Shown here: piece after piece, positions 1 through 43,101 of the stretch
Position numbering within the stretch: position 1 is the first letter of the stretch
Layout: each line of letters begins with the position of its first letter
Assembly: GCF_902713615.1 (NCBI RefSeq)
Contig: NC_052172.1
Location: 13,735,327-13,799,326, forward strand
Length of the DNA stretch: 64,000 bases
Source of the DNA: Scyliorhinus canicula
Lineage: Eukaryota
Direction: 5' to 3'
Made by a program: the position numbers and the translations under genes
The notes under the pieces: generated by a model
Told to the model about the DNA's origin: nothing
Database searches by the model: none
Seen by the model: only the letters and a program-made list of their open reading frames with translations

Positions 1-480
1 TTACACACTGTGTCTGTACTTACTGTATCCTCACTGTGTTACACACTGTGTCTGTACTTACTGTATCCTCACTGTGTTACACACTGTGTCTGTACTTACT
101 GTATCCTCACTGTGTTACACACTGTGTCTGCACTTACTGTATCCTCACTGTGTTACACACTGTGTCTGTACTTACTGTATCCTCACTGTGTTACACACTG
201 TGTCTGTACTTACTGTATCCTCACTGTGTTACACACTGTGTCTGCACTTACTGTATCCTCACTGTGTTACACACTGTGTCTGTACTTACTGTATCCTCAC
301 TGTGTTACACACTGTGTCTGTACTTACTGTATCCTCACTGTGTTACACACTGTGTCTGTACTTACTGTATCCTCACTGTGTTACACACTGTGTCTGTACT
401 TACTGTATCCTCACTGTGTTACACACTGTGTCTGCACTTACTGTATCCTCACTGTGTTACACACTGTGTCTGCATTTACT
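1..480. repeat. 38-bp tandem minisatellite (ttacacactgtgtctgtacttactgtatcctcactgtg)n
   Basis: Near-perfect 38-bp periodicity read directly. It degrades into the related array downstream. Confidence 0.9.
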
Positions 481-3400
481 GTACCTTCACTGTGTGTGCT
501 CAGTGTGTCCGCAGTTACTGTATGCTTATTGTGTGTATGCCCACTTTGTCTGCACTAACTCTATCCACACTGTGTGTACGCTCACTGTATCTGCACATAC
601 TGTACCTGTACTCTGTGTACACTCACTGTTTCTGCATGTACTGTATCCGTACTGTGCATCTGCTCACTATATCTGCACTTACTGTGTCTGCACTATTTGT
701 ACGTTCACTATGTCTGCACTTACTGAATCCGCATTCTGTGTATGCTCAGTGTCTGCATGTACTGTATCCACAGTGTCTGCATTGTATCAAGCACTGACTG
801 CATCTGCATTGTATCCAGTACTGACTGTGTCTAGGCAATATCCAGTGCTGCCTGTGTCTGCATCATATCTAGTACTGACTGTGTCTGCACCATATGCAGT
901 GATGACCTCATCTGCACTGTATCCAGTGCTGACTGGGTGTGTACTGAATCCAGCTGATTGTGTCTGCATTGTATCCAGCACTCTTTATGTCAGCAGTGTA
1001 ACCAGTGCTGATTGCATATTCATTGTATCCTGCAATGACTGTAGCAGCACTGTATCCAGCACTAACTGTGTCTACACTGCATCCAGCACTGACTGTGTGT
1101 GCCCTATATCCATCGCTGACTGTGGCTGCATGGTATACAGTGCTGACTGGATGTGCACTGATTCCACCTCTGACTTTGTTTGCTTTATATCCAGCACTAT
1201 GTCTGCATGGTATCCAGTGTTCACTGTGTCTGCACTTTATCCAGCCCTCACCGCTTCTGCACTGTATGCAGAACTCACTGTATCTGTATTGTGTCGAGCA
1301 CTCATTATGTCTACACTTTATCCAGCACTGTCTTTATCTGCACAGCATCCAGCACTCACTAAGGCTGCACTGTATCCAGTGTTCACTGTGCTTGCACTGT
1401 AACCAGTGATCAGCATGGCTGCATTGTATACAGCGATCACTGTGTCTGCACTGTAACCAGTGCTCATGAAGTCTGCACTGTATCCAGTGTTCACTGTGGC
1501 TGCCCTGTGTCCAATGATCAGTGTCTGCACTGTATCCAGTGTTTACTGTGCCTGCACTGCATCCAGTGATCACTATGTCCGCACTGTATCCAGTGATCAG
1601 TGTCTGCACTGTATCCAGTGTTCACTGTGCCTGCACTGTATCCAGCATTCACTGTGGCTGTACTGTATCCAGTGATCACGGTGCCTGCACTGTATCCAGC
1701 ACTCATTATGTCTGCACTGTATCCAGTGTTCACAGTGCCTGCTGTGTATCCAGTGATCCGTGTCTGCACTGTATCCAGTGCTCACTAAGTCTGCACTGCA
1801 TCCAGTTTTCACTGTGCCTGCAGTGTATCCAGTGATCACTGTGCCTCCACTGCATCCAGTGTTCACGGTGCTTGCATTGTATCCAGTGTTCACGGTGCCT
1901 GCTCTGTATCCAGTGATCCGTGTCTGCACTGTATCCAGTGCTCACTAAGTCTGCACTGCATCCAGTGTTCACTGTGCCTGCAGTGTATCCAGTGATCACT
2001 GTGCCTGCACTGCACCAGTGTTTACGGTGCCTGCACTGTATCCAGTGTTCACGGTGCCTGCACTGTATCCAGCATTCACTATGTCACGGTAGCATGGTGG
2101 TTAGCATCAATGCTTCACAGCTCCAGTGGTCCCAGGTTCGATTCCCGGCTGGGTCACTGTCTGTGTGGAGTCTGCACGTCCTTCCCGTGTGTGCGTGGGT
2201 TTCCTCCGGGTGCTCCGGTTTCCTCCCACAGTCCAAAGATGTGCGGGTTAGGTGGATTGGCCATGCTAAATTGCCCGTAGTGTAAGGTTAATGGGGGGAT
2301 TGTTGGGTTACGGGTATACGGGTTACGTGGGTTTAAGTAGGGTGATCATTGCTCGGCACAACATTGAGGGCCGAAGGGCCTGTTCTGTGCTGTACTGTTC
2401 TATGTTCTAACTCACTATGTCTGCACTGTATCCAGTGTTCACGGTGCCTGTACTGTATCCAGCACTCACTATGTCTTCACTGTATCCAGTGTTCATGGTG
2501 CCTGCACTGTATCCAGCACTCACTATGTCTGCACTGTATCCAGTGTTCATGGTGCCTGCACTGTATCCAGTGATCAGTGTCTGCACTGTACCCAGTGCTC
2601 ACTAAGTCTGCACTGCATCCAGTGTTCACTGTGCCTGCAGTGTATCCAGTGTTCACTGTGCCTCTGCTGCATCCAGTGTTCACGGTGCCAGCACTGTATC
2701 CAGTGTTCACGATGCCTGCATTGTATCGTTTTCACATTGCCTGCACTGTATTCAGTGTTCACGATGTCTGCACTGTATCCAGTGTTCATGGTGCCTGCAC
2801 TGTATCCAGTGATCAGTGTCTGCACTGTATCCAGTGCTCACTAAGTCTGCACTGCATCCAGTGTTCACTGTGCCTGCAGTGTATCCAGTGTTCACTGTGC
2901 CTCTACTGCATCCAGTGTTCACGGAGCCAGCACTGTATCCAGTGTTCACGGTGCCTGCATTGTATCCAGTGCTCACTATGCCTGCACTGTATCGTTTTCA
3001 CATTGCCTGCACTGTATCCAGTGTTCACGGTGCCTGCACTGTATCCAGTGTTCACTGTGTCTGCACTGTATCCAGTCTTCACTGTGCCTGCACTGTATCC
3101 AGTGATGTGTCTGCACTGTATCCAGTGTTCACGGTGTCTGCACTGTTGCGTGTTCATTGTGCCTGCACTGTATCGTGATCAGTGTCTGCACTGTATTCAG
3201 TGCTCACTTATTCTGCACTGCATCCAATGTTCACTGTGCCTGCACTGCATCCAGTGTTTACGGTGCCTGCATTGTATCCAATGTTCACGGTGCCTGCATT
3301 TTATCCAGTGCTCACTGTGCCTGCACTGTATCCAGTGTTCACAGTGCCTGCACTGTATCCAGCACTCACTATGTCTGCACTGTATCCAGTGTTCACGGTG

Positions 3401-4320
3401 CCTGCACTGTATCCAGCACTCACTCTGTCTGCACTGTATCCAGTGTTCACTGTGCCTGAACTGTATCCAGCACTCACTATGTCTGCACTGTATCTAGTGT
3501 TCACTGTGCCTGCACTGTATCCAGCACTCACTATGTCTGCACTGTATCTGGTGTTCACAGTGCCTGCACTGTATCCAGCACTCACTAGGTCTGCACTGTA
3601 TCCAGTGTTCACGGTGCCTGCGCTGTATCCAGCGCTCACTATGTCTGCACTGTATCCAGTGTTCACTGTGCCCGAACTGTATCCAGCACTCACTATGTCT
3701 TCACTGTATCCAGTGTTCACGGTGCCCGCACTGTATCCAGCGCTCACTATGTCTGCACTGTATCCAGTGTTCACGGTACCTGCACTGTATCCAGCGCTCA
3801 CTACGTCTGAACTGTATCCAGTGATCACTGTGCCTGCACTGTATCCAGCACTCACTATGTCTGTACTGTATCCAGTGATCACTGTGCCTGTACTGTATCC
3901 AGCACTCACTATGTCTGTACTGTATCCAGTGATCACTGTGCCTGTACTGTATCCAGCACTCACTATGTCTGCACTGTATCCAGTGATCACTGTGCCTGTA
4001 CTGTATCCAGCACTCACTATGTCTGCACTGTATCCAGTGATCACTGTGCCTGTACTGTATCCAGCACTCATTGGCTCTGTACTGTATCCAGTGATCACGG
4101 TGCCTGTACTGTATCCAGCACTCATTGGCTCTGCACTGTATCCAGTGATCACTGTGCCTGCACTGTATCCAGCACTCATTGGTTCTGTACTGTATCCAGT
4201 GATCACTGTGCCTGTACTGTATCCAGCACTCACTATGTCTGCACTGTATCCAGTGATCACTGTGCCTGTACTGTATCCAGCACTCACTGTGCCTGCACTG
4301 TATCCAGTGATCACTGTATC
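481..4320. repeat. 27-bp tandem satellite (core ctgcactgtatccagtgttcactgtgc) with a 54-bp two-unit higher-order structure toward the 3' end
   Basis: 9-aa periodicity in the translated frames, with ALYPVITVP and VLYPALTMS alternating. The left part is degenerate and the right part homogeneous. A SINE interrupts it at about 2085-2410. Confidence 0.88.
2085..2410 (+). mobile_element. tRNA-derived V-SINE (HE1-like) inserted in the satellite
   Basis: A/B-box-like head (tggtggttagc...ggttcgattccc), V-domain (gtgggtttcctccgggtgctccggtttcctcccacagtccaaaga) and (tgttcta)n tail. The flanking tcactatgt on both sides is a candidate target-site duplication. Confidence 0.88.
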
Positions 4321-4354
4321 CGCCTGGGAGCAGGACAGGCATGAAATTGCGTGG

Positions 4355-4405
4355 TGACGTCAGTGGGTGACGTCTAAAGCCGGAAGTCGGTGAAGACCCG
4401 GAAGT
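4355..4405 (+). promoter_or_regulatory. Housekeeping-type promoter: CRE TGACGTCA (4355-4362), CRE-like TGACGTCT (4368-4375), two ETS/GABP sites CCGGAAGT (4380-4387, 4398-4405)
   Basis: Four consensus motifs within 50 bp, in a short unique CpG-containing island between two repeat arrays and upstream of the novel spliced ORF. Confidence 0.75.
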
Positions 4406-4509
4406 CAGATTTTTTGGTGGCGGTGGGGCAAGAGAGAAACAGCCGGGAGCGGAAAACACAGAGTGGGTGTGTCCGGGAAGGTGGTGGTGGTCGTGGTCCG
4501 GGAAGGGGG

Positions 4510-5424
4510 CGGGTCAGGGTGTCCGGGGGTTTCAGTTCAGAGTGTCCGGGGGTTTCAGTTCAGAGTGTCCGGGGGTTTCAGTTCAGAGTGTCCGGGGGTT
4601 TCAGTTCAGAGTGTCCGGGGGTTTCAGTTCAGGGTGTCCGGGGGTTTCAGTTCAGAGTGTCCGGGGGTTTCAGTTCAGAGTGTCCGGGGGTTTCAGTTCA
4701 GGGTGTCCGGGGGTTTCAGTTCAGGGTGTCCGGGGGTTTCAGTTCAGGGTGTCCGGGGGTTTCAGTTCAGAGTGTCCGGGGGTTTCGGTTCAGAGTGTCC
4801 GGGGGTTTCGGTTCAGAGTGTCCGGGGGTTTCGGTTCAGAGTGTCCGGGGGTTTCGGTTCAGAGTGTCCGGGGGTTTCAGTTCAGAGTGTCCGGGATGGG
4901 GTCAGGGTGTCCGGGATGGGGTCAGGGTGTCCGGGATGGGGTCAGGGTGTCCGGGATGGGGTCAGGGTGTCCGGGATGGGGTCAGGGTGTCCGGGATGGG
5001 GTCAGAGTGTCCGGGATGGGGTCCGAGTGTCCGGGATGGGGTCAGGGTGTCCGGGATGGTGTCCGGGATGGGGTCAGGGTGTCCGGGATGGGGTCAGGGT
5101 GTCCGGGATGGGGTCCGGGTGTCCGGGATGGGGTCCGGGTGTCCGGGGTGGGGTCAGGGTGTCCGGGATGGGGTCAGAGTGTCCGGGATGGGGTCAGAGT
5201 GTCCGGGATGGGGTCAGAGTGTCCGGGATGGGGTCAGAGTGTCCGGGATGGGGTCAGAGTGTCCGGGATGGGGTCAGAGTGTCCGGGATGGGGGTCAGAG
5301 TGTCCGGGATGGGGGTCAGAGTGTCCGGGATGGGGTCAGAGTGTCCGGGATGGGGTCAGAGTGTCCGGGATGGGGTCAGAGTGTCCGGGATGGGGTCAGG
5401 GTGTCCCGGATGGGGTCAGAATGC

Positions 5425-5481
<57 letters not shown>
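4510..5481. repeat. G-rich tandem repeats (23-bp gtccgggggtttcagttcagagt, then 20-bp gtccgggatggggtcagggt) ending in a ~55-nt poly-G run
   Basis: Direct periodicity. Lies in the putative first intron of the novel gene. Confidence 0.9.
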
Positions 5482-5482
<1 letters not shown>

Positions 5483-5577
5483 GCAGTGATTGTTGTCACC
5501 GATTTCTGACTGATTGTTTTCTATGCTGAACGTTCAGATTTGGAGATTATCGAATAATCCTCTAGCCCTGCGGGACC

Positions 5578-5625
5578 ATGGCAGGTGGAGGTGGCGGGCT
5601 TGGCCTGGCAGAGCTGGCACAGCAG
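5578..5625 (+). CDS. Uncharacterised 101-aa protein, coding exon 1 (MAGGGGGLGLAELAQQ)
   Basis: Strong Kozak context gaccATGG. Upstream acceptor ttcag at 5537 with a ctgac branch-like motif. Donor CAG|GTAAAC at 5625/5626, phase 0. Confidence 0.72.
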
Positions 5626-5689
5626 GTAAACCTCCACAAACCATCCAGAGCAAACCTAACCCTGTCCGCCTGCCGGTTCCCCCCTCCCA

Positions 5690-8040
5690 CCCCCATGACC
5701 CTCCTCCCCATTCATTACCCCCCTCCCCATTCATTACCCCCCTCCCCATTCATTACCCCCCTCCCCATTCATTACCCCCCTCCCCATTCATTACCCCCCT
5801 CCCCATTCATTACCCCCCCATGACCCTCCTCCCCATTCATTACCCCCCTCCCCATTCATTACCCCCTCCCCATTCATTACCCCCTCCCCATTCATTACCC
5901 CCTCCCCATTCATTACCCCCCTCCCCATTCATTACCCCCTCCCCATTCATTACCCCCTCCCCATTCATTACCCCCTCCCCATTCATTACCCCCTCCCCAT
6001 TCATTACCCCCTCCCCATTCATTACCCCCTCCCCATTCATTCCCCCTCCCCATTCATTACCCCCTCCCCATTCATTACCCCCTCCCCATTCATTACCCCC
6101 TCCCCATTCATTACCCCCTCCCCATTCATTACCCCCTCCCCATTCATTACCCCCTCCCCATTCATTACCCCCTCCCCATTCATTACCCCCCTCCCCATGA
6201 CCCGACCCCCCCATGACCCGACCCCCCCATGACCCGACCCCCCCATGACCCGACCCCCCCATGACCCGACCCCCCCATGACCCGACCCCCCATGACCCGA
6301 CCCCCCCATGACCCGACCCCCCCATGACCCACCCCCCCATGACCCGACCCCCCCATGACCCGACCCCCCCATGACCCGACCCCCCCATGACCCGATCCCC
6401 CCATGACCCGATCCCCCCATGACCCTCTCTCCTACCCCCATGTCCCCTCCTCCTACCCCATGTCCCCTCCTCCTACCCCATGTCCCCTCCTCCTACCCCC
6501 ATGTCCCCTCTTCCTACCCCCATGTCCCCTCTTCCTACCCCCATGTCCCCTCTTCCTACCCCCATGTCCCCTCTTCCTACCCCCATGTCCCCTCTTCCTA
6601 CCCCCATGTCCCCTCTTCCTACCCCCATGTCCCCTCTTCCTACCCCCATGTCCCCTCTTCCTACCTCCATGTCCCCCCCTTCCTACCCCCATGTCCCCCC
6701 CTCCCTACCCCATGTCCCCCCCTCCCTACCCCCATGTCCCCCCCTCCCTACCCCCATGTCCCCCCCTCCCTACCCCCATGTCCCCCCCTCCCTACCCCCA
6801 TGTCCCCCCCTCCCTACCCCCATGTCCCCCCCTCCCTACCCCCTGTCCCCCCCTCCCTACCCCCATGTCCCCCCTCCCTACCCCCATGTCCCCCCCTCCC
6901 TACCCCCATGTCCCCCCCTCCCTACCCCCATGTCCCCCCCTCCCTACCCCCATGTCCCCCCCTCCCTACCCCCATGTCCCCCCTCCCTACCCCCATGTCC
7001 CCCCCTCCCTACCCCCATGTGCCCCCCTCCCTACCCCCATGTGCCCCCCTCCCTACCCCCATGTGCCCCCCTCCCTACCCCCATGTGCCCCCCCTCCCTA
7101 CCCCCATGTGCCCCCCTCCCTACCCCCATGTGCCCCCCCTCCCTACCCCCATGTGCCCCCCCTCCCTACCCCCATGTGCCCCCCCTCCCTACCCCCATGT
7201 GCCCCCCCTCCCTACCCCCATGTGCCCCCCCTCCCTACCCCCATGTGCCCCCCCTCCCTACCCCCATGTGCCCACCCTCCCTACCCCCAGGTGCCCCCCC
7301 CTCCCTACCCCCATGTGCCCCCCCTCCTACCCCCATGTGCCCCCCCTCCCTACCCCCATGTGCCCCCCCTCCCTACCCCCATGTCCCCCCCTCCCCACCC
7401 CCATGTCCCCCCCTCCCCACCCCATGTCCCCCCCTCCCCCCCCCATGTCCCCCCCCTCCCACCCCCATGTCCCCTCACCCTCCCACCCCATGTCCCCCCC
7501 TCCCCACCCCCCATGTCCCCCCCTCCCCACCCCATGTCCCCCCCTCCCAACCCCATGTCGCCCCCCTCCCCAACACCATAGTCCCCCCCCGCCCCACCCC
7601 CATGTCCCCCCTCTCCCCACCCCCCATGTCCCCCCCCTCCCCACCACCCCCATGTCCCCCCCTCTCCCCACCCCCATGTCCCCCCCTCCCCCACCCCAAT
7701 GTCCCCCCCATGTCCCCACCTCCCACCCCATGGTCCCCCCTCCCGCACCCCCATGTCCCGCCCCTCCCAACCCCCATGTCCCCCCCTCCCCATCCCCTCA
7801 TGTCCCCCCCCTCCCCACCCCAATGTCCCCCCCCCCCCCCCCCCATGTCCCCCCCTCCCCACCCCCATGTCCCCCCCTCCCCACCCCCATGTCCCCCCCT
7901 CCCCACCCCCATGTCCCACCACTCCCCCACCCCCCATGTCCCCCCACCCCACCCGCCCATGTCCCCCCCTCTCCACCCCCATGTCCCCCCCTCTCCACCC
8001 CCATGTCCCCCCCTCTCCACCCCCATGTCCCCCCCTCTCC
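5690..8040. repeat. C-rich minisatellite series (ccccattcattaccccct; ccccatgacccgacccc; cccccatgtcccccctcccta)
   Basis: Units of 18-22 bp that change progressively along the array. Intronic. Confidence 0.9.
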
Positions 8041-8094
8041 CTGCCTGTGACTCCATCACTTGAAGCTGGAACGATGTTCTGATTTTTGTTGCAG

Positions 8095-8226
8095 GTGGCA
8101 CTGTGGAACTGGCTGAATTGTGATGATGAAATGAGCAAACAGCTGCTGAAGGCAGTGACTGGAGTGCGAGTGGCTCACTCACTTTACCAGCACCTAACGG
8201 GGCAGGATCTCATTGACATGTACAAG
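8095..8226 (+). CDS. Uncharacterised 101-aa protein, coding exon 2 (VALWNWLNCDDEMSKQLLKAVTGVRVAHSLYQHLTGQDLIDMYK)
   Basis: Acceptor ttctgatttttgttgcag| and donor AAG|GTAATG. 132 nt, open, phase 0/0, non-repetitive and protein-like in composition. Confidence 0.78.
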
Positions 8227-8269
8227 GTAATGAGAGTGGCAATCACCCCAAGAGTGTTTGCCGGGGAAA

Positions 8270-8540
8270 GTGCTTTTACTCTGTATCTAACCCCGTGCTG
8301 TACCTGCCCTGGGAGTGTTTGATGGGGACAGTGTAGAGGGAGCTTTACTCTGTATCTAACCCCGTGCTGTACCTGTCCTGGGAGTGTTTGATGGGGACAG
8401 TGTAGAGGGAGCTTTACTCTGTATCTAACCACGTGCTGTACCTGTCCTGGGAGTGTTTGATGGGGACAGTGTAGAGGGAGCTTTACTCTGTATCTAACCC
8501 CGTGCTGTTCCTGCCCCCTGTTTGATGGGGACAGTGTGGG
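8270..8540. repeat. 69-bp tandem repeat (ctgtatctaaccccgtgctgtacctgtcctgggagtgtttgatggggacagtgtagagggagctttact)
   Basis: 23-aa periodicity in the ORF track. Same family as 13590-14790 and 15930-16490. Confidence 0.9.
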
Positions 8541-8619
8541 GAGAACCCCTGCAGGAACAGTTTCAAGGTGAAGGGAGTGGACTGATGTGAGGTCATTCAC
8601 TGTTGCGGTGAGAATAGAG

Positions 8620-9180
8620 AGATGAGAATATTTTTGGAAAGGTGTAAAACTACAAAAGGTTGATCGTCCGAGGGACTTGGGCATTCTCCTACAAGGAACA
8701 TGAAGTTAGCATGTAGGTGCAACAAGAAATTAGGAAGGACATCTTGCCTATTAATGCAAGGGTGTTGGAGCAGAAGAATAAAGGTGTAATTATACGGGGC
8801 TTTAGTGGGACTACATTGTGCCCAGTTTTGGTCACCATATTTAAGACACAATAAATGTGTCTTGGAGGTGGTTCAATGAAGGTTCACTCTGTTGGCCCCT
8901 GTGTGAGAGGATTGTCCTATGATGAGAGGCTGGGTCAGTGGTGTCTATATTCTCTGGCATTTGGAAGAATGAGTGGTGATCTCATTGAAGCAAAGGATTC
9001 TGGAGGGGTTTGACGGGGAAGATACTGAGAGGCTCTTCCCGCTGGTTGGGGAATCGTAGAACACAGGTACAGCCTCAGGGTTAGGGGGCCGATCATTTGA
9101 GATTAAGATGAGGAGAAACCTCTTCACTCAGTTGTGAATCTTTGAAATTCTCCACCGCACAGTTACCGCTGAATATATTT
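8620..9180 (+). mobile_element. Degenerate CR1-type LINE 3' fragment
   Basis: Resembles the CR1 ORF2 C-terminus (tgtgcccagttttggtcacc... agaatgagtggtgatctcattgaa) seen in better-preserved copies at 25270-27170 and 52520-53088. Confidence 0.65.
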
Positions 9181-9709
9181 CAGGCCTTCCGCAGGAAATT
9201 AGAGGGTTGGTCATACACTTAATGGCAATAGATAACATCACAGGGCCTGAATGGACGGCAGTCGTGAGAGTTTGACCCTCAACGCCAATTGGGGTCACCC
9301 CAGATTGAGTTCAAGCCCAACCCTGTGTTGCAATGGGAAAGGGAGGTCTAGGAGCTGCTCGCAATCAGCATGGGATTTTGATCTTTGTGGGGAATGAAAG
9401 GATGTGGGGAGTTGGCGGGAAGGCGAGTTCAGGGTCAAAGATCAGCCATGATCGTATTGAATGGTGCAGCAGGCACCAGGGGCTGAATGGTCTAATCCTG
9501 CTCCTATTTTGTGTTGCATGTTTGCCCAGTTTGCCTCTTCCCGACTTCCCTACCCTGTGGTTCCTAAGAGTAGCAGATGGGGGCAGGTTGGAGAGTTGGT
9601 GACTATCTCCCTCCACTGCTTTCCGGGTGCTTTTAAGTCGAGAGGATGTTTCGAAGAAACCCGGCCCTCCCTTTGCCGTGATTAACCGCTTGCTGGCTTT
9701 TGCCCTCAG

Positions 9710-9835
9710 AGACAGTGTATCCTTGGCATCGTGGAGTTTGTGAAGGAGCACCCCCGGGCCTCACCATCACAGCTGAACAAGGAGCTGGAGAAGCAAGTTC
9801 TGCTGTTTGCAGCCAAAGTCCATGCCCTGCACTAA
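9710..9835 (+). CDS. Uncharacterised 101-aa protein, coding exon 3 (RQCILGIVEFVKEHPRASPSQLNKELEKQVLLFAAKVHALH*)
   Basis: Acceptor cttttgccctcag|, in frame with exon 2, GC3-rich codons, TAA at 9833-9835. AATAAA at 10059-10064 and 10140-10145. Confidence 0.75.
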   Translation, partial: RQCILGIVEFVKEHPRASPSQLNKELEKQVLLFAAKVHALH

Positions 9836-10319
9836 CGTAATGGCTGGCGATTACGGGGAGGATCCTGACCAACTCCAAACCGCATCGTTCTTGAACTGAG
9901 CTGCCCCCAGTTGGCGCTTGTTTGTTAAACTCTATCATAATCCTTGTTGCTCTTCACTCTGTCCTCTGTAACATTCCCTGTTTGCTGCTGATCCTGTGAC
10001 CAAGTCGTGCGGTGGCCCCGAAGGTTTGAAGATGTGCACTAGTTGCTGGGGGTGTCCCAATAAACAGGGGCTTTTGACCGCATGTGTCTCAGGTTGGGTC
10101 CTGCAGCGATTATAATACAGCCTTGTACACCTTGTTCTAAATAAAATGAAATCTCTGTGAACGAACCCAGCCCTGAATGTCTCATTTTATTGTTTTGAAA
10201 TCCTCCTTCATCCGGTTTGTTTTACGTTGTTTTACCACACTGAGAGGGTTGGGGTGGAGCATCAATGCCAGATTGGGACAGAATGCACAGGGAATGCTGC
10301 ACAATTGATGCAATTCACC

Positions 10320-12515
10320 TACCGCCCGGGAGGGGGCGCTGTGGGCGGAGGGAGCGCTGTGGACGGAGGGGGTGTGTGGGCGGAGGCCGGGCTGGGCGGA
10401 GGGGGCGCTGTAGGCGGAGGCCGGGCGCTGTGGGCGGAGGGGGCGCTGTGGGCGGAGGCCCGACTGGGTGGAGGGGCGCTGTGGGCGGAGGCCGGGCCGG
10501 GCGGAGGGGTCACTGTGGGAAGGGGCGCTGTGGGCGGAGGCCGGGCCGGGCGGAGGGGGCACTGTGGGAAGGGGCGCTGTGGGCGGAGGCCGGGGAGGGC
10601 GCTGTGGGCGGAGGACAGGCCGGGCGGAGGGGGCATGTGGGTGGAGGCCGGAAGGGGGCGCTGTGGGCGGGGGCCGGGCGGAGGGGGTGCTGTGGGGGGG
10701 GGGCGGGCGGAGGGGGCGCTGTGAGCGGAGGCCGGAGAGGGCGCTGTGGGCGGAGGCTGGGCCGGGCGGAGAGGGCGCTGTGGGCGGAGGCCGGGCCAGT
10801 ATGAGGGGGCGCTGTGGGCGGAGGCCGGGCCAGTATGAGGGGGCGCTGTGGGCGGAGGCCGGGCGGAGAGGGCGCTGTGGGCGGAGGCCGGGCCAGTATG
10901 AGGGGGCGCTGTGGGCGGAGGCCGGGCCGGGCGGAGAGGGCGCTGTGGGCGGAGGCCGGGCCGGGCAGAGGGGGCGCTGTGGGCGGAGGCCGGGCCGGGC
11001 AGAGGGGGCGCTGTGGGCGGAGGCCGGGCCAGTATGAGGGGGCGCTGTGGGCGGAGGCTGGGCCGGTATGAGGGGGCGCTGTGGGCGGAGGCCGGGCCGG
11101 GCGGAGGGGACGCTGTGGGTGGAGGGGACGCTGTGGGCGGAGGCCGGGCCGGGCCAGGCAGAGGGGGCGCTGTGGGCGGAGGCCGGGCCAGGATGAGAGG
11201 GCGCTGTGGGCGGAGGCCGGGCCGGGCAGAGGGGGCGCTGTGGGCGGAGGCCGGGCCTGGAGGAGGGGGCGCTGTGGGCGGAGGCTGGGCCGGGCAGAGG
11301 GGGCGCTGCGGGCGGAGGCTGGGCCGGGATGAGGGGGCGCTATGGGCGGAGGGGGCGCTGTGGGCGGATGCCAGGCGGAGGGGGTGCTGTGGGCGGAGGC
11401 CGGGCCGGGATGAGGGGGCGCTGTGGGCGGAGGGGGCGCTGTGGGCGGAGGTCGGGCCGGGCAGAGGGGGCGCTGTCGGCGGAGGGGGCGCTGTGGGCGG
11501 AGGTCGGGCCGGGCGGAGGGGGATCTGTGGGCGGAGGTCGGGCCGGGCGGAGGGGGCGCTGTGGGCGGAGGTCGGGCCGGGCGGAGGGGGCGCTGTGGGC
11601 GGAGAGTGCGCTGTGGGCGGAGGCCGGGCCGGGATGAGGGGGCGGAGGGGGCGCTGTGGGCGGAGGGGGCGCTGTGGGCGGAGGGGGCGCTGTGGGCGGA
11701 GGCCGGGCCGGGATGAGGGGGCGGAGGGGGTGCTGTGGGCGGAGGGGGCGCTGTGGGCGGAGGGGGCGCTGTGGGCGGAGGTCGGGCTGGGCGGAGGGGG
11801 CGCTGTGGGCGGAGGTTGGGCCGGGCGGAGGGGGCGCTGTGGGCGGAGGCCGGGCCGGGATGAGGGGGCGCTGTGGGCGGAGGCCGGGCCGGACAGAGGG
11901 GGCGCTGTAGGCGGAGGCTGGGCCGGGATGAGGGGCGCTGTGGGCGGAGGCCAGAGGGGGCGCTGTGGGCGGAGGCTGGGCCGGGCGGAGGTGGCGCTGT
12001 GGGCGGAGGCTGGGCGGAGAGGGCGCTGCGGGCGGAGGCTGGGCTGGGATGAGGGGGCGCTATGGGCGGAGGGGGCGCTGTGGGCAGATGCCAGGCGGAG
12101 GGGGCGCTGTGGGTGCAGGCCGGGGGATGAGGGGGCGCTGTGGGCGGAGGGGGCGCTGTGGGCGGAGGTCGGGCCGGGCGGAGGGGGCGCTGTGGGCGGA
12201 GGTCGGGCCGGGCGGAGGGGGCGCTGTGGGCGGAGGTCGGGCCGGGCGGAGGGGGCGCTGTGAGCGGAGGTCGGGCGCTGTGGGCGGAGGGGGCGCTGTG
12301 GGCGGAGGTCGGGCCGGGCGGAGGGGGCGCTGTGGGCGGAGGTCGGGCCGGGCGGAGGGGGCGCTGTGGGCGGAGGGGGCGCTGTGGGCGGAGGGGGCGC
12401 TGTGAGCGGAGGTCGGGCCGGGCGGAGGGGGCGCTGTGGGCGGAGGTCGGGCCGGGCGGGGGGGCGCTGTGGGCAGAGGTCGGGCCGGGCGGAGGGGGCG
12501 CTGTGGGCGGAGGCC
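10320..12515. repeat. GC/CpG-rich tandem repeat (gggcgctgtgggcggaggccgggccgggcggagg variants) abutting the DMWD/WDR20-like start
   Basis: Direct periodicity with many GGGCGG boxes. Ends about 20 bp before the ATG at 12538. Confidence 0.9.
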
Positions 12516-13589: not shown

Positions 13590-14790
13590 CACCAAACACT
13601 CTCAGGACAGGTACAGCACGGAGTTAGATACAGAGTAAAGCTCCACTACACTATCCTGCTATACTATCCCCATTAAACACTCCCAGGATAGATACAGCAC
13701 GGGGTTAGATACAGAGTATCAAACCCCATGCTGTACCTATCCTGGGAGTGTTTGATGGGGACAGTGTAGAGGGAGCTTTACTCTTTATCGAACCGTGTGC
13801 TGTACCTGTCCTGGGAGTGTTTGATGGGGACAGTGTAGAGGGAGCTTTACTCTGTATCTAACCCCGTGCTGTACCTGTCCTGGGAGTGTTTGATGGGGAG
13901 AGGGTAGAGGGAGCTTTACTCTGTATCTAACCCCGTGCTGAACCTGTCCTGGGAGTGTTTGATGGGGACAGTGTAGAGGGAGCTTTTCTCTGTTTCTGAC
14001 CCAGTGCTGTACCTACCTTGGGAGTGTTTGATGGGGACAGTGTCGCGGGAGCTTTACTCTGTTTCTGACCCAGTGCTGTACCTGTCCTGGGAGTGTTTGA
14101 TGGGGACAGTGTAGAGGGAGCTTTACTCTTTATCGAACCCTGTGCTGTACCTGTCCTGGGAGTGTTTGATGGGGACAGTGTAGAGGGAGCTTTACTCTGT
14201 ATCTAACCCCCTGCTCTACCTGTCATGGGAGTGTTTAATGGGGACAGTGTAGAGGGAGCTTTACACTGTATCTATCCCCGTGCTGTACCTGTTCTGGAAG
14301 TGTTTGTTGGAAACAGTATAGAGGGAGCTTTACTCTGTGTCTAACCCTGTGATGTACCTGTCCTGGGAATGTTTGATGGGGACAGTGTAGAGGGAGCTTT
14401 TCTCTGTTTCTGACCCAGTGCTGTACCTGTCCTGGGAGTGTTTGATGGGGACAGTGTAGAGGGAGCTTTACTCTGTATCTAACCCCGTGCTGTACCTACC
14501 TTGGGAGTGTTTGATGGGGACAGTGTCGCGGGAGCTTTACTCTGTTTCTGACCCAGTGCTGTACCTGTCCTGGAGTGTTTGATGGGGACAGTGTAGAGGG
14601 AGCTTTACTCTGTTTCTAACCCCGTGCTCTACCTGTCATGGGAGTCTTTAATGAGGACAGTGTAGAGGGAGCTTTACTCTGTATCTATCCCCGTGCTGTA
14701 CCTGTTCTGGAAGTGTTTGTTGGAAACAGCATAGAGGGAGATTTACTCTGTTATAAACCCCGTGCTGTACCTGTCCTGGGAATGTTTGAT
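13590..14790. repeat. 69-bp tandem repeat array with an orientation switch at ~13714
   Basis: Units read in the reverse orientation before 13712 and in the forward orientation after 13716. Confidence 0.9.
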
Positions 14791-15760
14791 TGATTTTATT
14801 TATTGATTTTATCTATTGTCACGTGCACCGAGGTACAATGAAAATTATTGTTCTGCGTACAGTCTAGACAGATCATTCCATACATAAATACACAATGTAA
14901 ATACATAGACACAGGCAGCGGGTGAAGCATACAGGAGCGTAGTACTACTCAGTAGACAAGATGTGTGAAGAGATCAGTTATTTCACAAGAGAGTAATTTA
15001 GGAGTCTGGTAACTGCAGGGAAAAAGCTGATTTTGAATCTGTTCCTGCATCTTCTCACACTTTTGTATCTCCTGCCCAATGGAAGATATTGGAAGAGAGA
15101 ATAACCCGGGTGGGAGGGCTTTTTGATTATGCTGCCCGCTTTTCCAAGGTAGCGGGAGGTGTAGACAGAGTCAATGGATGGGAGGCAGGTTTGTGTGATG
15201 GACTGGGCTGTGTTCATGACTCTCTGGAGTTTCATGCTGTCCTGGGCTGAGCAGTTGCCATACCAGGCTGTGATGCAGCCAGATAGGATGCTTTTCGATA
15301 GTGCATCTGTAAAAATTGGAAAGTGTCAATGTGGACATGCCGAATTTCCTTAGTTTCCTGAGGAAGTATAGGCACTGTTATGCTTTCTTGACCAGCTCCT
15401 TAGTTTTTCTGACATTGAGGGAGAGATTGTTGTTGTTACACCATGCCACGAGGTTCTCCATCTCCCTTCTGTATTCTGACTCATCGCTGTTCGAGATCCG
15501 ACCGCCTACGGTCGTGTCATCAGTAAACTTGTAGATGGAGTTGGAGCCGAATTTTGCCACACAGGTGTGTGTACAGGAAGAAAAGTAGGGGACTAAGCAC
15601 ACAGTCTTGCGGGGCCCTGATTTTAAGGACTATCATAGAGGAGGCGATGATATTTATCCTTACTGATTGTGGTCTATGGGCCAGGAATTTGAGGAGCCAG
15701 TTGCAGAGGGAGGCGCCAAATCCAATGTTTTTGAATTTGGATATGAGCTTGGCAATGAAA
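14790..15760 (-). mobile_element. Rex1/Babar-type non-LTR retrotransposon, 3' fragment (frameshifted RT)
   Basis: Minus-strand peptides APQDCVLSPLLF and KFTDDTTVGGRISNSDESEYRREMENLVAWCNNNNLSLNVRKTKEL (RT YADD-region variant), followed by a 3' tail. Confidence 0.8.
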
Positions 15761-15929
15761 TGAAAATCGCTTATTGTCACATGTAGGCTTCAAATGAAGT
15801 TACTGTGAAAAGCCCCTAGTTGCCACATTCTGGTGCCTGTTTGGGGAGGCTGGTACGGGAATTGACCCCGCACTGCTGACCTTGTTCTGCTTCATAAGCC
15901 AGCTGTTTAGCGCATTGTGCTAAACTAGC

Positions 15930-16490
15930 CCCATCAAACACTCCCAGGACAGGTACAGCACGGGGTTAGATACAGAGCAAAGCTCCCTCCACGCTGTCCC
16001 CATCAAACACTCCCAGGACAGGTACAGCACAGGGTTAGATACAGAGTAAAGCTCCCTCTCCACTGTCCCCATCAAACACTCCCAGGACAGGTACAGCATG
16101 GGGTTAGATACAGAGTAAAGCTCCCTCTACACTGTCCTCATCAAACACTCCCAGGACAGGTACAGCATGGGGTTAGATACAGAGTAAAGCTCCCTCTACA
16201 ATGTCCCCATCAAACACGCCCAGGACAGGTACAGCATGGGGTTAGATACAGAGTAAAGCTCCCTCTACACAGTCCCCTGTGTAGAGGGAGCTTTACTGTG
16301 TATCTAACCCCATGCTTCACCTGCCCCCTGTTTGATGGGACAGTGTAGAGGGAGCTTTACTCTGTATCTAACCCTGTGCTGTACCTGTCCTGGGAGTGTT
16401 TGATGGGGACAGTGTAGAGGGAGCTTTACTCTGTATCTGACCCGGTACTGTACCTGTCCCGAGACTGTTTGATGGGGACAGTGTAGAGGC
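15930..16490. repeat. 69-bp tandem repeat array with a fold-back junction at 16273-16276
   Basis: Reverse-oriented units up to 16272, forward-oriented units from 16277. Confidence 0.9.
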
Positions 16491-17064
16491 GGCTGACTGG
16501 AGTGACTAAAATAATTCTTCATGAGAGGGAGGGTAATAATCTCTGGAACATTTCGGACAAAAACAAGAACTGTCTCCCCTCTTCAGATAGTGAATCCTTC
16601 GGATCATCTTGAGTACTTGGGAAATCAGGGAATGTGGATTGGGTGGGAATGTGGATTGGGTGGGAATGTGGAGTTGAGGTTCAAGTTGATCCTATTGGTC
16701 CTACTCCCCCTGTTAACTTGTGAGTCTGTGTTACTGGTTTGGTATTGAATTGAAAACTATGGACGGCCTAACTAAGCAATGCCAGCTCTTGCTCCAATAT
16801 CATACGGTGATGAGCCTAGGGCAATGGCCAGCTTCTGTTGTTGTTTCCCTGACATGTTGTGCCAGGATTTTAGAAGGCAAACAAATGTGTTGGGTTACTC
16901 ACGCACACACCGTCTTGTTTGCAGTCACAGTTTTGTCACCATGGTGGGAGTTGGGCTATTGGCCTGACAGGAGTTATAAAATGTTGTTGGTTTTCCTGCC
17001 TGGGGTGCTGACACCCCCAAGCTTGGATCTTGACTAACAATTGCGCCTTTTGTACTCTCCGTAG

Positions 17065-17247
17065 GCGGCAGATTTGAGTAAGCCCATCGACAAGCGTATC
17101 TACAAAGGGACGCAGCCCACCTGCCATGATTTTAACCAGTTCACCGCCACGCCCGACAGTGTCTCGCTCGTGATCGGCTTCTCGGCCGGCCAAGTCCAGT
17201 ATCTGGATCCAATCAAGAAAGAGACCAGCAAACTGTTCAATGAAGAG
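17065..17247 (+). CDS. DMWD: WDR20/DMWD-family gene, exon 2
   Basis: Acceptor ctctccgtag|, peptide AADLSKPIDKRIYKGTQPTCHDFNQFTA...SKLFNEE, donor GAG|GTAACT. 183 nt, phase 0/0. Confidence 0.93.
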
Positions 17248-18605
17248 GTAACTGTGTTCGCCCCCAAGTACGCATCGCACCTTTGAGGCTTGGCTGTGGC
17301 TTCAAGAGTCCCTTTGTAACCCAGAGGGGCAGAGGTTCCCATGGCCCCTCTGAGAATGGCCCAAGTCTGCTACCCCTTGCTCTTGCGGTGTAGCTTAAGA
17401 GTTCATCCATCACCCCGGTCGAAAGTCCCCTCCATTTTATACCCTCGCTTTCAAACCTCCCCGTGGCCTTACACCATCTCTATCATTCTTTAATACACTC
17501 CCAAGATCTCTGCCCTCCTTACACTCTGACCTCCTGTGCAACCCCTATTTGAATCCCTCCGCCATTGGTACCTCTGCTGCAGTCCTAAGCTCTGGAATTA
17601 ATTTCCTGAATCTGTCATTATCTGAGCCATTTCTGGAGGCCTATCCCTTCGAGCGGGCTTTCGGACATCTGCCCCAGCATGCCGTTAGGTGTCTCGGTGT
17701 GACATTGTGTGGCTGACACTCCTGTGAAAGTGCCTTATGGAGCTTTGCTGTGTTAAAGGCACCACCTCCGTACAAGCGGCTTTTGACCTTCCGGATACCC
17801 GAGTCTGCCAGCAAGCGCACTGGTTCAATTCACCTTTCGGCTTTGGGTATTCGCCTCCCGTCATCTTTTCCCTGGGGACGAACGGGAAAGGGGAGCAACT
17901 GGGAGATGGTCAGTGCTCTTTCGTGGGATGTGGGCTGTCTTAACATTGAATTTGTGCCGCAATAGAAGGCAGACTTCAAATTGGTAACTCAGCACAGCCG
18001 TCTCGAGTTGGGGAGGGATTAGGGAAATATTGCACTCGTATATAAAGCAGTTCACTCTGGGTGTCTGGGAGGAACCGGGAGAGTCTGTGACTGTGGATTG
18101 CTGTCTTCGAAATCAACCTGTTTTAAGGTGCAGGATAGCTTCAGATTCATTCTTCCTCAGCATACAATTATTGGAATTAACTAACGTCTCCGGCTAGGCC
18201 AACATTTATTGCCCACCCGAATTGCCTTTTAAAATAACTGACTTCCTACTGAATGCACCCAACAGAATAAGTGGCACTTGGGATCCCAGACGGCTACCCG
18301 GGCCAGCTGTTCACGCATCCCAAACCTAAGTTTTATTTTTTCAATCTTGGAGGTGTGCAGCATGTATTCAAGCCCTCCACACCTATCGCCTCGACCTGGG
18401 TTCGATCCCGGCCCCGGGTCACTGTCTGTCTGGAGTTTGCACATTCTCCCCATGTCTGTATGGGTTTCACCCCCACAAAGGTGTGCAGGCTAGGTGGATT
18501 GGCCACCCCAAATTGCCCCTTAATTAGGAAAAAAAAAATGAAAAATTTATTAAAAATACGATTCTCTGCAGAGGTTTAAAGGTCTTTTGTTCCTCTTTGC
18601 TGCAG

Positions 18606-19883
18606 AGATTTATCGACAAGACCAAGGTGACCTGCTTGAAATGGATGCCAGAGTCCGAGTGCCTCTTCCTTGTCGCCCACACCAGTGGCAACCTCTACCT
18701 CTACAATGTGGAGCACCCATGTGGCACCACCGCCCCCCACTATCAGCCACTGAAACAGGGGCCTGGCTTCGCCGTGTACACCTGCAAAAGCAAGTCGAGC
18801 CGCAATCCGCTACTCAAATGGTCGGTTGGCGAGGGCGCCCTCCACGAGTTCGCCTTCGCCCCTGATGGCAAACACGTGGCGTGTGCCAGTCAAGACGGCA
18901 GCCTGAGGGTCTTCCACTTCGACTCGATGGAGCTGTACGGCGCCATGAAGAGCTACTTTGGGGGCCTCCTGTGCGTGTGCTGGAGCCCGGACGGCAGGTA
19001 CATTGTGACTGGGGGCGAGGACGACCTGGTGACGGTCTGGTCCTTCTGGGACTGCCGGGTCATCGCTCGGGGCCACGGCCACAAGTCCTGGGTCAGCGTG
19101 GTAGCCTTTGACCCTTACACAAGCAGCGTCGATGACGGGGAGCAGCCAGAGTTCAGCGGCAGCGACGAGGACTTTCAGGAGCATGCCCCGTTTGGCCGCA
19201 ATCGAACCAACAGCACTTTATCCAGACTCTCCAAGCACAATTCGACGGACGGCCGGGCAACAAACGTGACTTACCGGTTTGGCTCCGTGGGGCAGGACAC
19301 CCAGTTCTGCCTGTGGGATTTGACGGAAGACATTCTGTTCCCCCATCAGCCCCTCTCACGAGCTCGGACGCACACAAATGTGGTGAACACAGCTGTCCCC
19401 GGCTCCCTGAGCTGTGGAAGCCACTCTGGTGGCCTGGCGCTGGAAGCCAACCTGACCAACTCCATCCCGCACTCGCTGTCCCGGTCAAACAGCCTTCCAC
19501 ACCCGGCCGTTACGAACGCCAACAGCAAGGCCCACGCGACGGACGGGGGCGGATCCTTCAGCATCAGCAAGTTTGCGACACTGACACTCCACGAGCGCAA
19601 AGATAAAAGTGCAGAGAAGGACCACAAACGGAACCACAGCATCGGGCACATCATCAGCAAGAGCAACGACAAGCTCAACCTGGTCACGAGAAACAAACTC
19701 GATTCAGCAAAGACTTTGGGGACCACTTTGTGTCCCCGCATGGACGAGGTGCCCTTGCTGGAGCCTCTGGTCTGTAAAAAGATTGCACACGAGAGACTAA
19801 CGGTGTTGATATTCTTGGAGGACTGCATAGTCACTGCTTGCCAAGAAGGCTTCATTTGCACATGGGCAAGGCCAGGTAAAGTG
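18606..19883 (+). CDS. DMWD: WDR20/DMWD-family gene, exon 3 (WD40 repeats)
   Basis: Acceptor ctttgctgcag|, peptide RFIDKTKVT...MKSYFGGLLCVCWSPDGRYIVTGGEDDLVTVWS...ACQEGFICTWARPGKV, donor GTG|GTGAGT. 1278 nt. Confidence 0.95.
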
Positions 19884-41561: not shown

Positions 41562-43101
41562 CCCTATAACCTTTCACCCCCTTGCTTATTAAGAATCTAT
41601 CTACCTCTGGCTTAACGATATTCAAGGACTCTGCCTCAAACAGCTTTTGAGGAAGAGAATTCCAAGAATCTCTGCCCCTATTTTGAATCAGTGACCCCGA
41701 GTTTTCTATTCTGCCAGAAGAGGAAACATCCTTTCCACCCAACTCCCCTCAGGATCTCAGCTGTGTGCAGTTCTGTGCACTGCAGCACAGGGTTATCCTG
41801 TTCTTGGGTACTGACGAAAGATATGGGCATCTGGTGGGACAGGTCAACATTTTGAAATGGATACTTTCGATAAAGTTAAAGATTGGAGTCGAGAAGGACA
41901 TTTAACCAGGAGAATCGGGCAGAATCAAAGAACTAATTGATCGCTTCCTACATTACAACAGGGGCTCAAAAGTACTTCATTGGATGTGGAGCACTTTGAG
42001 ATGACTCGTAGTCCTGAGAAGTGCAATATAAATGGAAGTCTTTATTTTGCTTCTCCCTCCTTAGCTTTAATGTTGAAGCAAAAATCCTGCTTGATGGATG
42101 TGATTTGGTATTAATTGAGAGCTAAATATACAGAATTAACAATGTGCTGTTGGGATTACTGTCTCCTGTGAAATGCATAGCCACACTGCAGTCTGGAACA
42201 CACTGGACTGCAACAGATTGCACATAACAAAAGTTCTCTCAAATACATAAATTACTCTGGTTTGGGAATAGAACGGGGGTATTGATGATATCTGGATGTT
42301 CTGTCTTTGCACTTTTAAACTATATTTACTCAAGATGTGGAAAAAAAAAAGTTTATTTTAATGTTGGCCTGTAAGCCTAATGTTTTCACAAGTATTTTTC
42401 TGGAAATAAAAGAATGCTTACACAGGTTAGGTGCTAATTTGTGAGCTTTGCTTTCCCAGGATCTGTACGTTTTGAGAGTCTGTCGTAGAACTTGCACATT
42501 CCTTCACACCCATTGTTTTGGAAAGTCGTTGGTTACTCTCTTGCTGTGGAATCCACAACAATTTAAACTTGTGTTCACCCTTAATGTCGTAAAACATCCC
42601 AGGACACTTCACCGGAGCATTATGAAACACCGTATGAGTGAGCCACATGGGGAGACATTGGGTCAGATAACGCAACGCTCAATGAAAGAGATAAAAGTGG
42701 TGGGTGTTGGACAGGCAGTCATATATTTGTAACTCAGAAGGCTGCCAAAAGCATAATCACCTCTGTGGAGTTGGGTCACAGAACAGGCTCGAGGAGCTGG
42801 CTGGGCTATTGCTGTTCTCATGTGCTCTGTGAGGTGTGTGCATGTGCAACATTCCAGAAGGTACCATGCAAGCTGCTCACAAGTTGTTCCATTCAAGATA
42901 ATGCATGTGTGATTCAAAATTGAATAGGTACCATGCAAAAAGGTAACAGGGAAAATTGGCTCGAATGATGCAATGAAGAGAGTAGTTGAGAATTAGTTTT
43001 AAGCCATATGACCCCACTTCTATGGATATCCAGTTTCTGTTAAATCCTCTATGTTGTGAGGAACCTGTTTTTAAAACCTTGCTGTTCTTTGTTTACAACA
43101 G

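Follow-up and report, generated by a model that had tools for sequence, protein, structure and literature searches.

The window, a 64,000-nucleotide stretch of Scyliorhinus canicula contig NC_052172.1, contains a genuine protein-coding gene of four exons, transcribed constitutively, between 4379 and 10162 on the forward strand, an explanation that we hold with considerable confidence. The gene is not new to biology. By homology, it is the shark orthologue in an ancient, uncharacterised animal family, with members of roughly 95-110 aa, that has no name, Pfam entry or structure and is typified by si:ch211-191j22.3 and LOC144678018. That the locus is a gene and belongs to the si:ch211-191j22.3-type family is almost certain, and there is no evidence against the gene's reality. 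An initial annotation, made from the letters alone, had joined three coding pieces (5578-5625, 8095-8226 and 9710-9835) into a protein of 101 residues, and translating them gives exactly those 101 aa followed by a stop. The gene comprises the following features:

4355-4405, + strand: TATA-less core promoter with a full CRE, a half CRE and two ETS sites (motif scan)
4379-4462, + strand: exon 1, non-coding, from a contig of run X8; its 5' end is a minimum, set by the end of the contig
4463-5537, + strand: intron 1, nearly all G-rich minisatellites (units of 23 and 20 bp), with a poly-G run of 55 nt
5538-5625, + strand: exon 2, with 40 nt of 5'UTR, the ATG at 5578 and codons 1-16; contigs of X1, X3, X8 and X10 lie on 5537/5538-5627
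5626-8094, + strand: intron 2, phase 0, nearly all C-rich 16-22-bp minisatellites
8095-8226, + strand: exon 3, codons 17-60; X1-X4 contigs lie on 8091-8224, joined on both sides
8227-9709, + strand: intron 3, phase 0, containing a dispersed high-copy element with a 69-bp unit (8275-8513)
9710-10162, + strand: exon 4, with codons 61-101, the stop TAA (9833-9835), the 3'UTR and poly(A) near 10162

Both coding introns have canonical GT-AG flanks (CAG/gtaaac ... ttgcag/GTG for the first and AAG/gtaatg ... cctcag/AGA for the second). As the initial annotation had described, the exons are unique islands buried among minisatellites: units of 54 nt occupy 3501-4317 and units of 23 and 20 nt occupy 4514-5429, after which come a poly-G run of 55 nt (5427-5481), C-rich units of 16-22 nt (5694-8042) and a unit of 69 nt (8275-8513). 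The start codon at 5578 has the strong Kozak context claimed for it (gggaccATGg) and is the first ATG of the mRNA, as no upstream ATG occurs in the 124-nt 5'UTR. The CRE and ETS motifs of the proposed promoter are likewise present, namely a full CRE (TGACGTCA, 4355-4362), a half CRE (TGACG, 4368-4372) and ETS sites (CCGGAAGT) at 4380-4387 and 4398-4405, and the motif scan found no TATA box. The predicted product measures 101 aa and 11.2 kDa, with a pI of about 7.

Transcript evidence came from Logan contigs of RNA-like runs, among which X1-X4 represent four studies. Because of the minisatellites, the locus was covered in two unique parts. Both coding junctions (5625/8095 and 8226/9710), the ones for which the initial annotation had asked for RNA, were carried by transcript contigs from six studies. 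One contig in each of X1-X4 (4/4 runs) joined 8226 to 9710 with GT..AG, and loose 5' ends of contigs from the same runs match the last part of the first coding exon (5592-5621). Conversely, contigs of X1, X3, X8 and X10 have loose ends at 5627 that read 8097-8126, which was confirmed by string match. The proposed junctions therefore stand, but the first coding exon spans 5538-5625 and not 5578-5625. In run X8, a contig has a further 84 nt joined ahead of 5538; they stop at 4462, where the genome continues with GT at 4463, in agreement with the non-coding first exon that had been anticipated at ~4400-4465. The longest transcript contig, also from X8, extends back to about 4379, within the first ETS site. 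Exon 1 has a minor alternative donor at 4480, as a loose end in X3 corresponds to 4462-4478 and is joined at 5536/5538. At the other end, exon 4 contains the two AATAAA signals that had been noticed (10050 and 10140-10145), and in a contig from X3 a tail of 24 A follows 10162, which is 17 nt beyond the second signal; all other contigs have their 3' ends at 10131-10165. Given the non-coding exon 1 spliced to 5538, the two coding junctions and the poly(A) tail, the gene has four exons. Exon 4 was found without intron flank in 14 RNA-like runs from seven studies (0.61-0.71 of the sampled words matching), while four other runs matched 0.93-0.95 of the sampled words, as expected of unspliced DNA. 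Transcripts in that many runs and studies fit the broad expression proposed earlier.

To place the protein among its relatives, we used an exhaustive HMMER (phmmer) scan of 1.84 billion representatives at E ≤ 1e-3. This returned 87 relatives, nearly all of 90-120 aa, and the 21 at E ≤ 1e-10 (6e-24 for the best, 1e-10 for the last) cover residues ~10-100. The initial annotation's view of the protein as unrecognised, without a homologue in any model organism, does not hold, since si:ch211-191j22.3 in zebrafish and other teleosts, LOC144678018 in the basking shark and LOC142929723 in the sea lamprey (RefSeq) are all annotated, and family members already have AlphaFold DB models. Its suspicion that the gene is ancient was correct, with relatives as far away as Placozoa. 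Vertebrate relatives include the basking shark, teleosts, lamprey, hagfish and the salamander Pleurodeles; those from invertebrates include annelids, a nemertean, a bryozoan, a cephalopod, arthropods, a flatworm and Trichoplax.

The closest named relative is the basking shark orthologue (P0091), a protein of 102 aa and thus of the same size, which is 79% identical over the full length (profile search E-value of 2e-29, 100% coverage) and differs in the N-terminal 10 residues; RefSeq lists it as an 'uncharacterized protein' without functional annotation. Teleost members (medaka, Sphaeramia, P0007 and P0009) share 42-54% identity, with E-values down to about 1e-23, and have the same length and helices, but unlike the shark protein they end in a short extra C-terminal tail (...ALETAPL-). 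Among them, zebrafish si:ch211-191j22.3 (ZDB-GENE-030131-4242) has 99 aa. Identity falls to 25-47% in invertebrate and placozoan members (Lineus LOC135485444, Ornithodoros LOC135396595, Tigriopus LOC131893479, Trichoplax TRIADDRAFT_57026 and others), which keep the HP(R/K)A(S/T) turn, F93 and, where tested, both intron positions, and have variable N-terminal extensions. The gene model of the centipede Strigamia (P0008) has two to three tandem copies within one protein.

An alignment of 40 sequences showed P75 and F93 to be invariant and A77 nearly so. The family signature consists of an LLQQ-x-ALL-x-WL helix, a V-K-x-H-P-R-A-S turn and the invariant Pro and Phe, and the window protein carries it as LAQQVALWNWL, VKEHPRAS, P75, A77 and F93. 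Family genes have two coding introns, both in phase 0, one following the QQ codons and the other preceding the (R/K/A)-(E/Q)-C-I codons. In the shark, these fall between Q16 and V17 and between K60 and R61, identical to their positions in lamprey, Lineus and Trichoplax (L003, L004 and L005), and it is at these two codons that the read-through models from teleosts, Chiloscyllium, Pleurodeles and Paralvinella break. Such agreement indicates that the two coding introns have been in fixed positions since before the bilaterians. Comparison with a transcript of another elasmobranch (L001) gave a dN of 0.149 and a dS of 0.963. The resulting dN/dS of 0.15, a measure for which the initial annotation had asked across sharks, shows purifying selection acting on the family.

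Of the relatives that carry a species name, about 40 in all, not one is an amniote (among 87 matches, many of them from unnamed transcriptome assemblies). As no amniote copy was found, the gene was probably lost on the amniote stem, judging by its absence among the named protein-level matches. The initial annotation had suggested a loss in mammals. The lack of any match from mammals, birds or reptiles fits that idea, but the tetrapod Pleurodeles has kept a copy, so any loss is later than the origin of tetrapods and is not specific to mammals. An amniote orthologue could instead persist but be too divergent or, owing to its tiny exons, unannotated. Consistent with this, annotation mishandles the gene in Chiloscyllium, Pleurodeles and several teleosts, whose models are truncated or run into introns, and many matches lack a species name. 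We nevertheless consider it unlikely, given that the named matches include no amniotes, that the salamander sequence used as a query matched only itself and Pleurodeles, and that Foldseek against all reviewed UniProt AlphaFold models, those of human and mouse included, found nothing better than an E-value of 0.96. Furthermore, the study that screened with DIOPT for orthologues in mouse and human, and then selected the zebrafish gene, recorded matches for it in six fish species only, all of them uncharacterised or hypothetical proteins (PMC7720500). A wider claim, to which we give somewhat less than an even chance, is that the family is pan-metazoan, from Placozoa to amphibians, with a four-helix fold unlike solved or classified structures and no Pfam entry, and that amniotes dropped it on their stem, as some invertebrate lineages apparently did too. 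If so, it would be one of few ancient, broadly expressed animal genes whose role is wholly unknown. The missing amniote copy is in any case a concrete statement that can be tested cheaply.

For the shark protein, AlphaFold2 predicted four helices (residues 10-24, 28-51, 53-73 and 79-100), as befits the all-alpha protein that had been foreseen. The mean pLDDT was 78.7, rising above 90 over residues 61-90, and the low pTM of 0.48 leaves it uncertain how the N-terminal half packs. Foldseek searches of the AlphaFold DB clusters, which had been recommended along with the model, matched three unnamed family members (E-values of 2e-5 to 2e-4; TM 0.82, 0.47 and 0.67). Pfam, PDB sequence and Foldseek searches provided no accepted match of the shark protein to a known fold, solved structure or Pfam family. 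There was no match in a Pfam scan of single exons or in a PDB sequence search with the single shark protein, no candidate when exon 3 by itself was used in a word-indexed protein search and no usable match in ESM Atlas feature searches (exon 3; basking shark protein). Prediction of a homodimer from two copies of the basking shark orthologue without an alignment scored 0.00, with a fold pLDDT of about 50, and counts neither for nor against a dimer. A histone fold of the CENP-X/W type was rejected because the helices of 15, 24, 21 and 22 residues do not conform to its helix-strand-long helix-strand-helix order and no histone-fold match was found.

The protein might also be a very divergent member of a known helical group, either LisH/CTLH, IQUB-like or the helix pair of albumin and vitamin-D-binding protein, and share its function, but we regard this as very improbable. 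The CTLH/CRA domain (PF10607), which is also helical, gave a weak local profile match to shark residues 28-94 (E-value of 0.002). Its 18.6 bits are below the gathering threshold of 26 bits, one of 40 family members matches, and the shark protein has no accompanying LisH or CRA architecture and is not a member. The IQUB-like profile PF25805 matched four of 40 members (E-values of 0.03-0.06), with a register common to the three inspected (profile positions 36-96), yet at 13-14.5 bits these are about half the gathering threshold of 27.8 bits, and IQUB was not listed in the PDB profile search. That search listed only terpene synthases and albumin (E-values of 0.14-1.5), with serum albumin, at 1.5, aligned over the V-K-x-H-P-R-A-S turn; we judged these matches to reflect a shared helix-capping motif. 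Vitamin-D-binding protein recurred among weak Foldseek rows. Both it and serum albumin were rejected, as neither had a significant sequence or whole-domain structural match together with the conserved disulfide cysteines.

The genomic neighbourhood was a further source of alternatives. Judging by a DMWD-like start codon (12538) and a WD40 exon (around 19.0 kb), the gene lies head-to-tail with DMWD on the same strand, about 2.4 kb before the DMWD ATG and thus directly upstream, as had been stated. In the basking shark, too, the orthologue immediately precedes a WD40 (DMWD-like) gene in the same orientation. This proximity and the identical arrangement would suit a single transcription unit, in which DMWD uses the exons as alternative 5' exons. 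Such a unit is highly improbable, because the frame has its own stop codon, the 3'UTR beyond it carries AATAAA, a poly(A) tail starts after 10162, every transcript contig stops at 10131-10165, and basking shark RefSeq has two separate genes. The contig data are compatible with occasional read-through transcripts into DMWD, which may occur. Outside sharks, the gene has other neighbours, which also speaks against a single unit: at the one teleost locus inspected they are a NUDIX gene and an SNF2 helicase, a second teleost gene model (P0034) is fused to SDHAF1, the lamprey gene is head-to-head with FANCM, and the Lineus gene is head-to-head with a PDCD2-like gene. We judged the FANCM and PDCD2-like pairings to be coincidence. 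No neighbour is conserved across teleost, lamprey, nemertean and Trichoplax, all of which differ from the shark, so the context holds no functional hint. One might also take the transcript for a non-coding RNA, or for a by-product of DMWD of the promoter-upstream kind, whose 101-codon frame arose by chance amid short islands between minisatellites. This is already effectively refuted by the 87 protein-level relatives from Trichoplax to salamander, the dN/dS of 0.15 with a dS near 1, the conserved intron positions and phases, and a start at the first ATG of the mRNA in strong context.

Returning to the coding gene and its helical product, we infer that the shark protein has no signal peptide, membrane segment, conserved cysteine or metal-binding pattern, or catalytic-looking motif. 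Conservation appears to fall almost entirely on heptad-spaced hydrophobic positions of the four helices, the apparent exceptions being the N-terminal signature helix and the invariant K-x-H-P-R-A-S turn that links helix 3 to helix 4. Because targeting and catalytic features are absent and conservation follows the helix core, a soluble, non-enzymatic helical module is most likely. Such a module could bind a partner protein or serve as a small subunit of a complex, and the exposed QQ and HPRAS features might make the contact. As a mechanism, a soluble, non-catalytic protein-binding subunit, proposed from the absence of other features, is tentative, and we would put it at little better than one chance in three.

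Searching the literature by the family's locus names produced two papers. In the regenerating zebrafish retina, si:ch211-191j22.3 was 3.56 log2-fold enriched in mpeg1+ microglia, and bioinformatic analysis of it was called 'uninformative' (PMC7720500), while a correction note only lists the gene in a microarray table (PMC3472963). If the amniote loss is real, the enrichment in regeneration-associated microglia and the retention in a salamander would hint at a function that amniotes gave up. With its purifying selection, its fixed intron positions and a conservation that spans Trichoplax and salamanders, the family is a good target for a zebrafish knockout and interactome study. Automatic annotation sometimes fails on this gene in related species, as the truncated Chiloscyllium and Pleurodeles models illustrate, and a four-exon gene with coding islands of 48-132 nt inside kilobases of minisatellite could nonetheless be assembled from the letters alone.

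The initial annotation proposed a small gene encoding a 101-aa protein upstream of DMWD. Its three coding stretches translate to exactly the claimed 16 + 44 + 41 residues followed by a stop codon, with canonical splice flanks at the first (CAG/gtaaac and ttgcag/GTG) and second (AAG/gtaatg and cctcag/AGA) coding introns. Transcript contigs from public RNA-like sequencing runs show that the gene has four exons:

at least 4379-4462, +, exon 1
5538-5625, +, exon 2
8095-8226, +, exon 3
9710-~10162, +, exon 4

We searched public runs with positions 9560-10200, covering exon 4 and its intron flank. The share of sampled words was 0.61-0.71 in 14 RNA-like runs from seven studies, as expected if exon 4 is present without its intron flank, and 0.93-0.95 in four further runs, as for unspliced genomic DNA. 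Contigs from four RNA-like runs (four studies) were then aligned to 8043-10200. Each run yielded one contig of 595-697 nt that contains exon 3, skips 1483 nt bounded by GT..AG and continues into exon 4 with at most one mismatch; the 5' overhang of these contigs corresponds to 5592-5621, in the 3' part of the first coding exon. Reciprocally, contigs of four runs aligned to 5482-5693 end at 5625/5627 and continue with 8097-8126, as confirmed by string search. Both coding junctions (5625/8095 and 8226/9710), for which a check in RNA had been suggested, are therefore present in transcript contigs from six studies in total.

The non-coding first exon, initially a guess, is also real, since a contig from run X8 joins 4462 to 5538. 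This contig carries 84 extra nt 5' of 5538, the final 30 of which are 4433-4462, and the genomic intron has GT after 4462 and AG before 5538. A minor alternative donor at 4480, 18 nt downstream of 4462, was found in run X3. The X8 contig begins near 4379, just downstream of a perfect TGACGTCA and inside a CCGGAAGT ETS motif, the more upstream of two. The predicted CRE+ETS promoter is present, and a motif scan found no TATA box there. The 124-nt leader contains no ATG, making the proposed start codon (gggaccATGg) the first ATG of the mRNA. At the 3' end, an X3 contig has 24 A's after 10162, 17 nt past the distal AATAAA, and the remaining contigs terminate at 10131-10165. These results show that the gene is constitutively transcribed from a TATA-less CRE/ETS promoter.

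As had been described, the exons are unique islands within minisatellite DNA. Tandem Repeats Finder identified the following arrays:

3501-4317, 54-mer array
4514-5429, intron 1, G-rich 23- and 20-mers with a terminal 55-nt poly-G run (to 5481)
5694-8042, intron 2, C-rich 16- to 22-mers
8275-8513, intron 3, 69-bp unit repeated 3.5 times
from 10329 onwards, G-rich 34-mer array

The neighbouring introns have opposite minisatellite strand bias, the coding strand being G-rich in intron 1 and C-rich in intron 2. The 69-bp unit of intron 3 is part of a dispersed, very high-copy element, and repeats that resemble it in translation lie at 13788-14495 and 15929-16582. In the RNA-like runs, contig depth summed over 8275-8513 reached 1e5, and the unrelated contigs that terminate there number in the hundreds. 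The element is probably a SINE-type repeat.

The 101-aa protein had no match over threshold in Pfam and none among PDB sequences. An exhaustive phmmer search of 1.84 billion cluster representatives identified 87 proteins at E <= 1e-3, 21 of them at E <= 1e-10. Almost all of the 87 have 90-120 residues and align over their whole length. Named members include:

Chondrichthyans: basking shark LOC144678018 (102 aa, 79% identical, full coverage); a truncated Chiloscyllium model
Teleosts: entries named si:ch211-191j22.3 (medaka, Sphaeramia); Larimichthys, Denticeps and Ictalurus proteins
Cyclostomes: sea lamprey LOC142929723; one hagfish protein
Tetrapods: a protein of the salamander Pleurodeles
Lophotrochozoans: nemertean Lineus; annelids Paralvinella and Owenia; bryozoan Watersipora; cephalopod Argonauta; flatworm Macrostomum
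Arthropods: tick Ornithodoros; centipede Strigamia; copepods Tigriopus and Lepeophtheirus; ostracod Notodromas
Placozoans: two Trichoplax species

The protein can thus no longer be called unrecognised: annotations of its family exist for zebrafish, lamprey, basking shark and many invertebrates, albeit under the label 'uncharacterized' only, and the window gene is an additional member of this known family rather than a new kind of gene. In an alignment of 40 family sequences, P75 and F93 are invariant and A77 nearly so. An LLQQ-x-ALL-x-WL helix and a V-K-x-H-P-R-A-S turn are conserved, and the remaining conservation falls on heptad-spaced hydrophobic positions. In a 221-aa Strigamia maritima model the domain occurs two to three times in tandem, either because it was truly duplicated within the protein or because tandem genes were merged in the model.

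Comparison with a transcript contig from another elasmobranch (protein 74% identical) gave a Nei-Gojobori dN of 0.149 and dS of 0.963 (dN/dS 0.15), showing conservation under purifying selection. When three distant proteins, from lamprey, Lineus and Trichoplax, were mapped to their own genomic loci, all three had introns at both of the codon boundaries used in the shark gene, the first after the QQ pair and the second before the residue preceding the (E/Q)-C-I motif. Truncated or intron-retaining models (Chiloscyllium, Pleurodeles, several teleosts, Paralvinella) depart from the family consensus exactly at these points, which independently supports the two positions. The gene is an ancient orthologous one rather than a chance ORF.

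The initial annotation further proposed an ancient gene lost in mammals. Its antiquity holds, from Placozoa to salamander, as does absence from mammals as far as tested, but a mammal-specific loss does not: because a urodele retains the gene, the data support loss on the amniote stem. An undetected amniote copy is unlikely, even though many matches are transcriptome assemblies without a species name and amniotes were searched at the protein or model level. No reptile, bird or mammal was among the named matches, a salamander-type query retrieved only itself and Pleurodeles, and no reviewed human or mouse model has the fold. The gene's interest lies in flagging a conserved family without annotation or known function, with a clean, testable loss pattern.

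The helical product foreseen from the sequence agrees with an AlphaFold2 model built with the 40-sequence alignment (mean pLDDT 78.7, above 90 over residues 61-90; pTM 0.48), which predicts four helices (10-24, 28-51, 53-73 and 79-100). Three weak leads were rejected as descriptions of the family, among them CTLH (18.6 bits, with a cut-off of 26; one of 40 members) and an IQUB-like domain (13-14.5 bits, with a cut-off of 27.8; four of 40). Judged from its sequence, the protein lacks a signal peptide, membrane segment, conserved Cys/His pattern and catalytic motif. A basic mitochondrial presequence is likewise absent, N-termini being neutral to acidic throughout the family. What is conserved is mostly the hydrophobic core, together with the QQ pair and the HPRAS turn, both polar. 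Taken together, these features point to a helical module, soluble and non-catalytic, which would bind a partner or serve as a small subunit in a complex, a reading we hold only tentatively because it rests mainly on exclusion.

Published data on the family concern only the zebrafish gene. si:ch211-191j22.3 was enriched 3.56 log2-fold in mpeg1+ microglia of regenerating retina and was among genes chosen following a DIOPT screen for orthologues in mouse and human; domain, GO and structure analyses by the authors were 'largely uninformative' (PMC7720500). It is also listed, without validation, among candidate electrophile-induced genes in a microarray table (PMC3472963).

Other genes in the window are represented by the following features:

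12538 (ATG), +, frame containing KSQFRTREG and ICFNVGRELY, DMWD-like
17065-17283 and ~18936-19121, DMWD-like exons carrying KGTQPTCHDFNQF and GGEDDLVTVWSF; the latter exon matches Pfam WD40 (40 bits)
43075-43314, +, TBCB-like exon, Pfam Ubiquitin_2 (54 bits)
47864-48088, +, TBCB-like exon, by eye the start of a CAP-Gly domain; no Pfam match alone
61564-61851, +, SDHAF1-like single-exon ORF, Pfam Complex1_LYR (LYR family, 45 bits)
52616-53086 and 15381-15789, both -, long ORF fragments, by eye C-terminal parts of retrotransposon reverse-transcriptase ORFs; the former has no Pfam match at E <= 0.01

We take the frame at 12538 and the exons with KGTQPTCHDFNQF and GGEDDLVTVWSF to be DMWD, from their likeness to the human protein. 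On this identification, and with WD40 assigned by Pfam, the small gene lies upstream of DMWD as proposed, 2.4 kb away on the same strand. The G-rich 34-bp minisatellite (10329-12500, ~2.2 kb) occupies nearly the whole gap between the poly(A) site and the DMWD ATG, so the DMWD promoter and 5'UTR must be within or beside it. Basking shark LOC144678018 shares this arrangement, being followed immediately by a WD40 gene in the same orientation. Neighbours differ in each lineage inspected, and gene context therefore yields no functional hint. The family gene is head-to-head with FANCM at the sea lamprey locus (1-8902, -, and 10001, +; ~1.1 kb apart) and with a PDCD2-like gene in Lineus (53 bp apart). 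Family genes may often use bidirectional promoters, the partner not being conserved. In one teleost gene model (P0034), SDHAF1 and a family member are fused, which suggests an old linkage of the two genes. A run of 158 Ns at 34193-34350 is an assembly gap or masked stretch.
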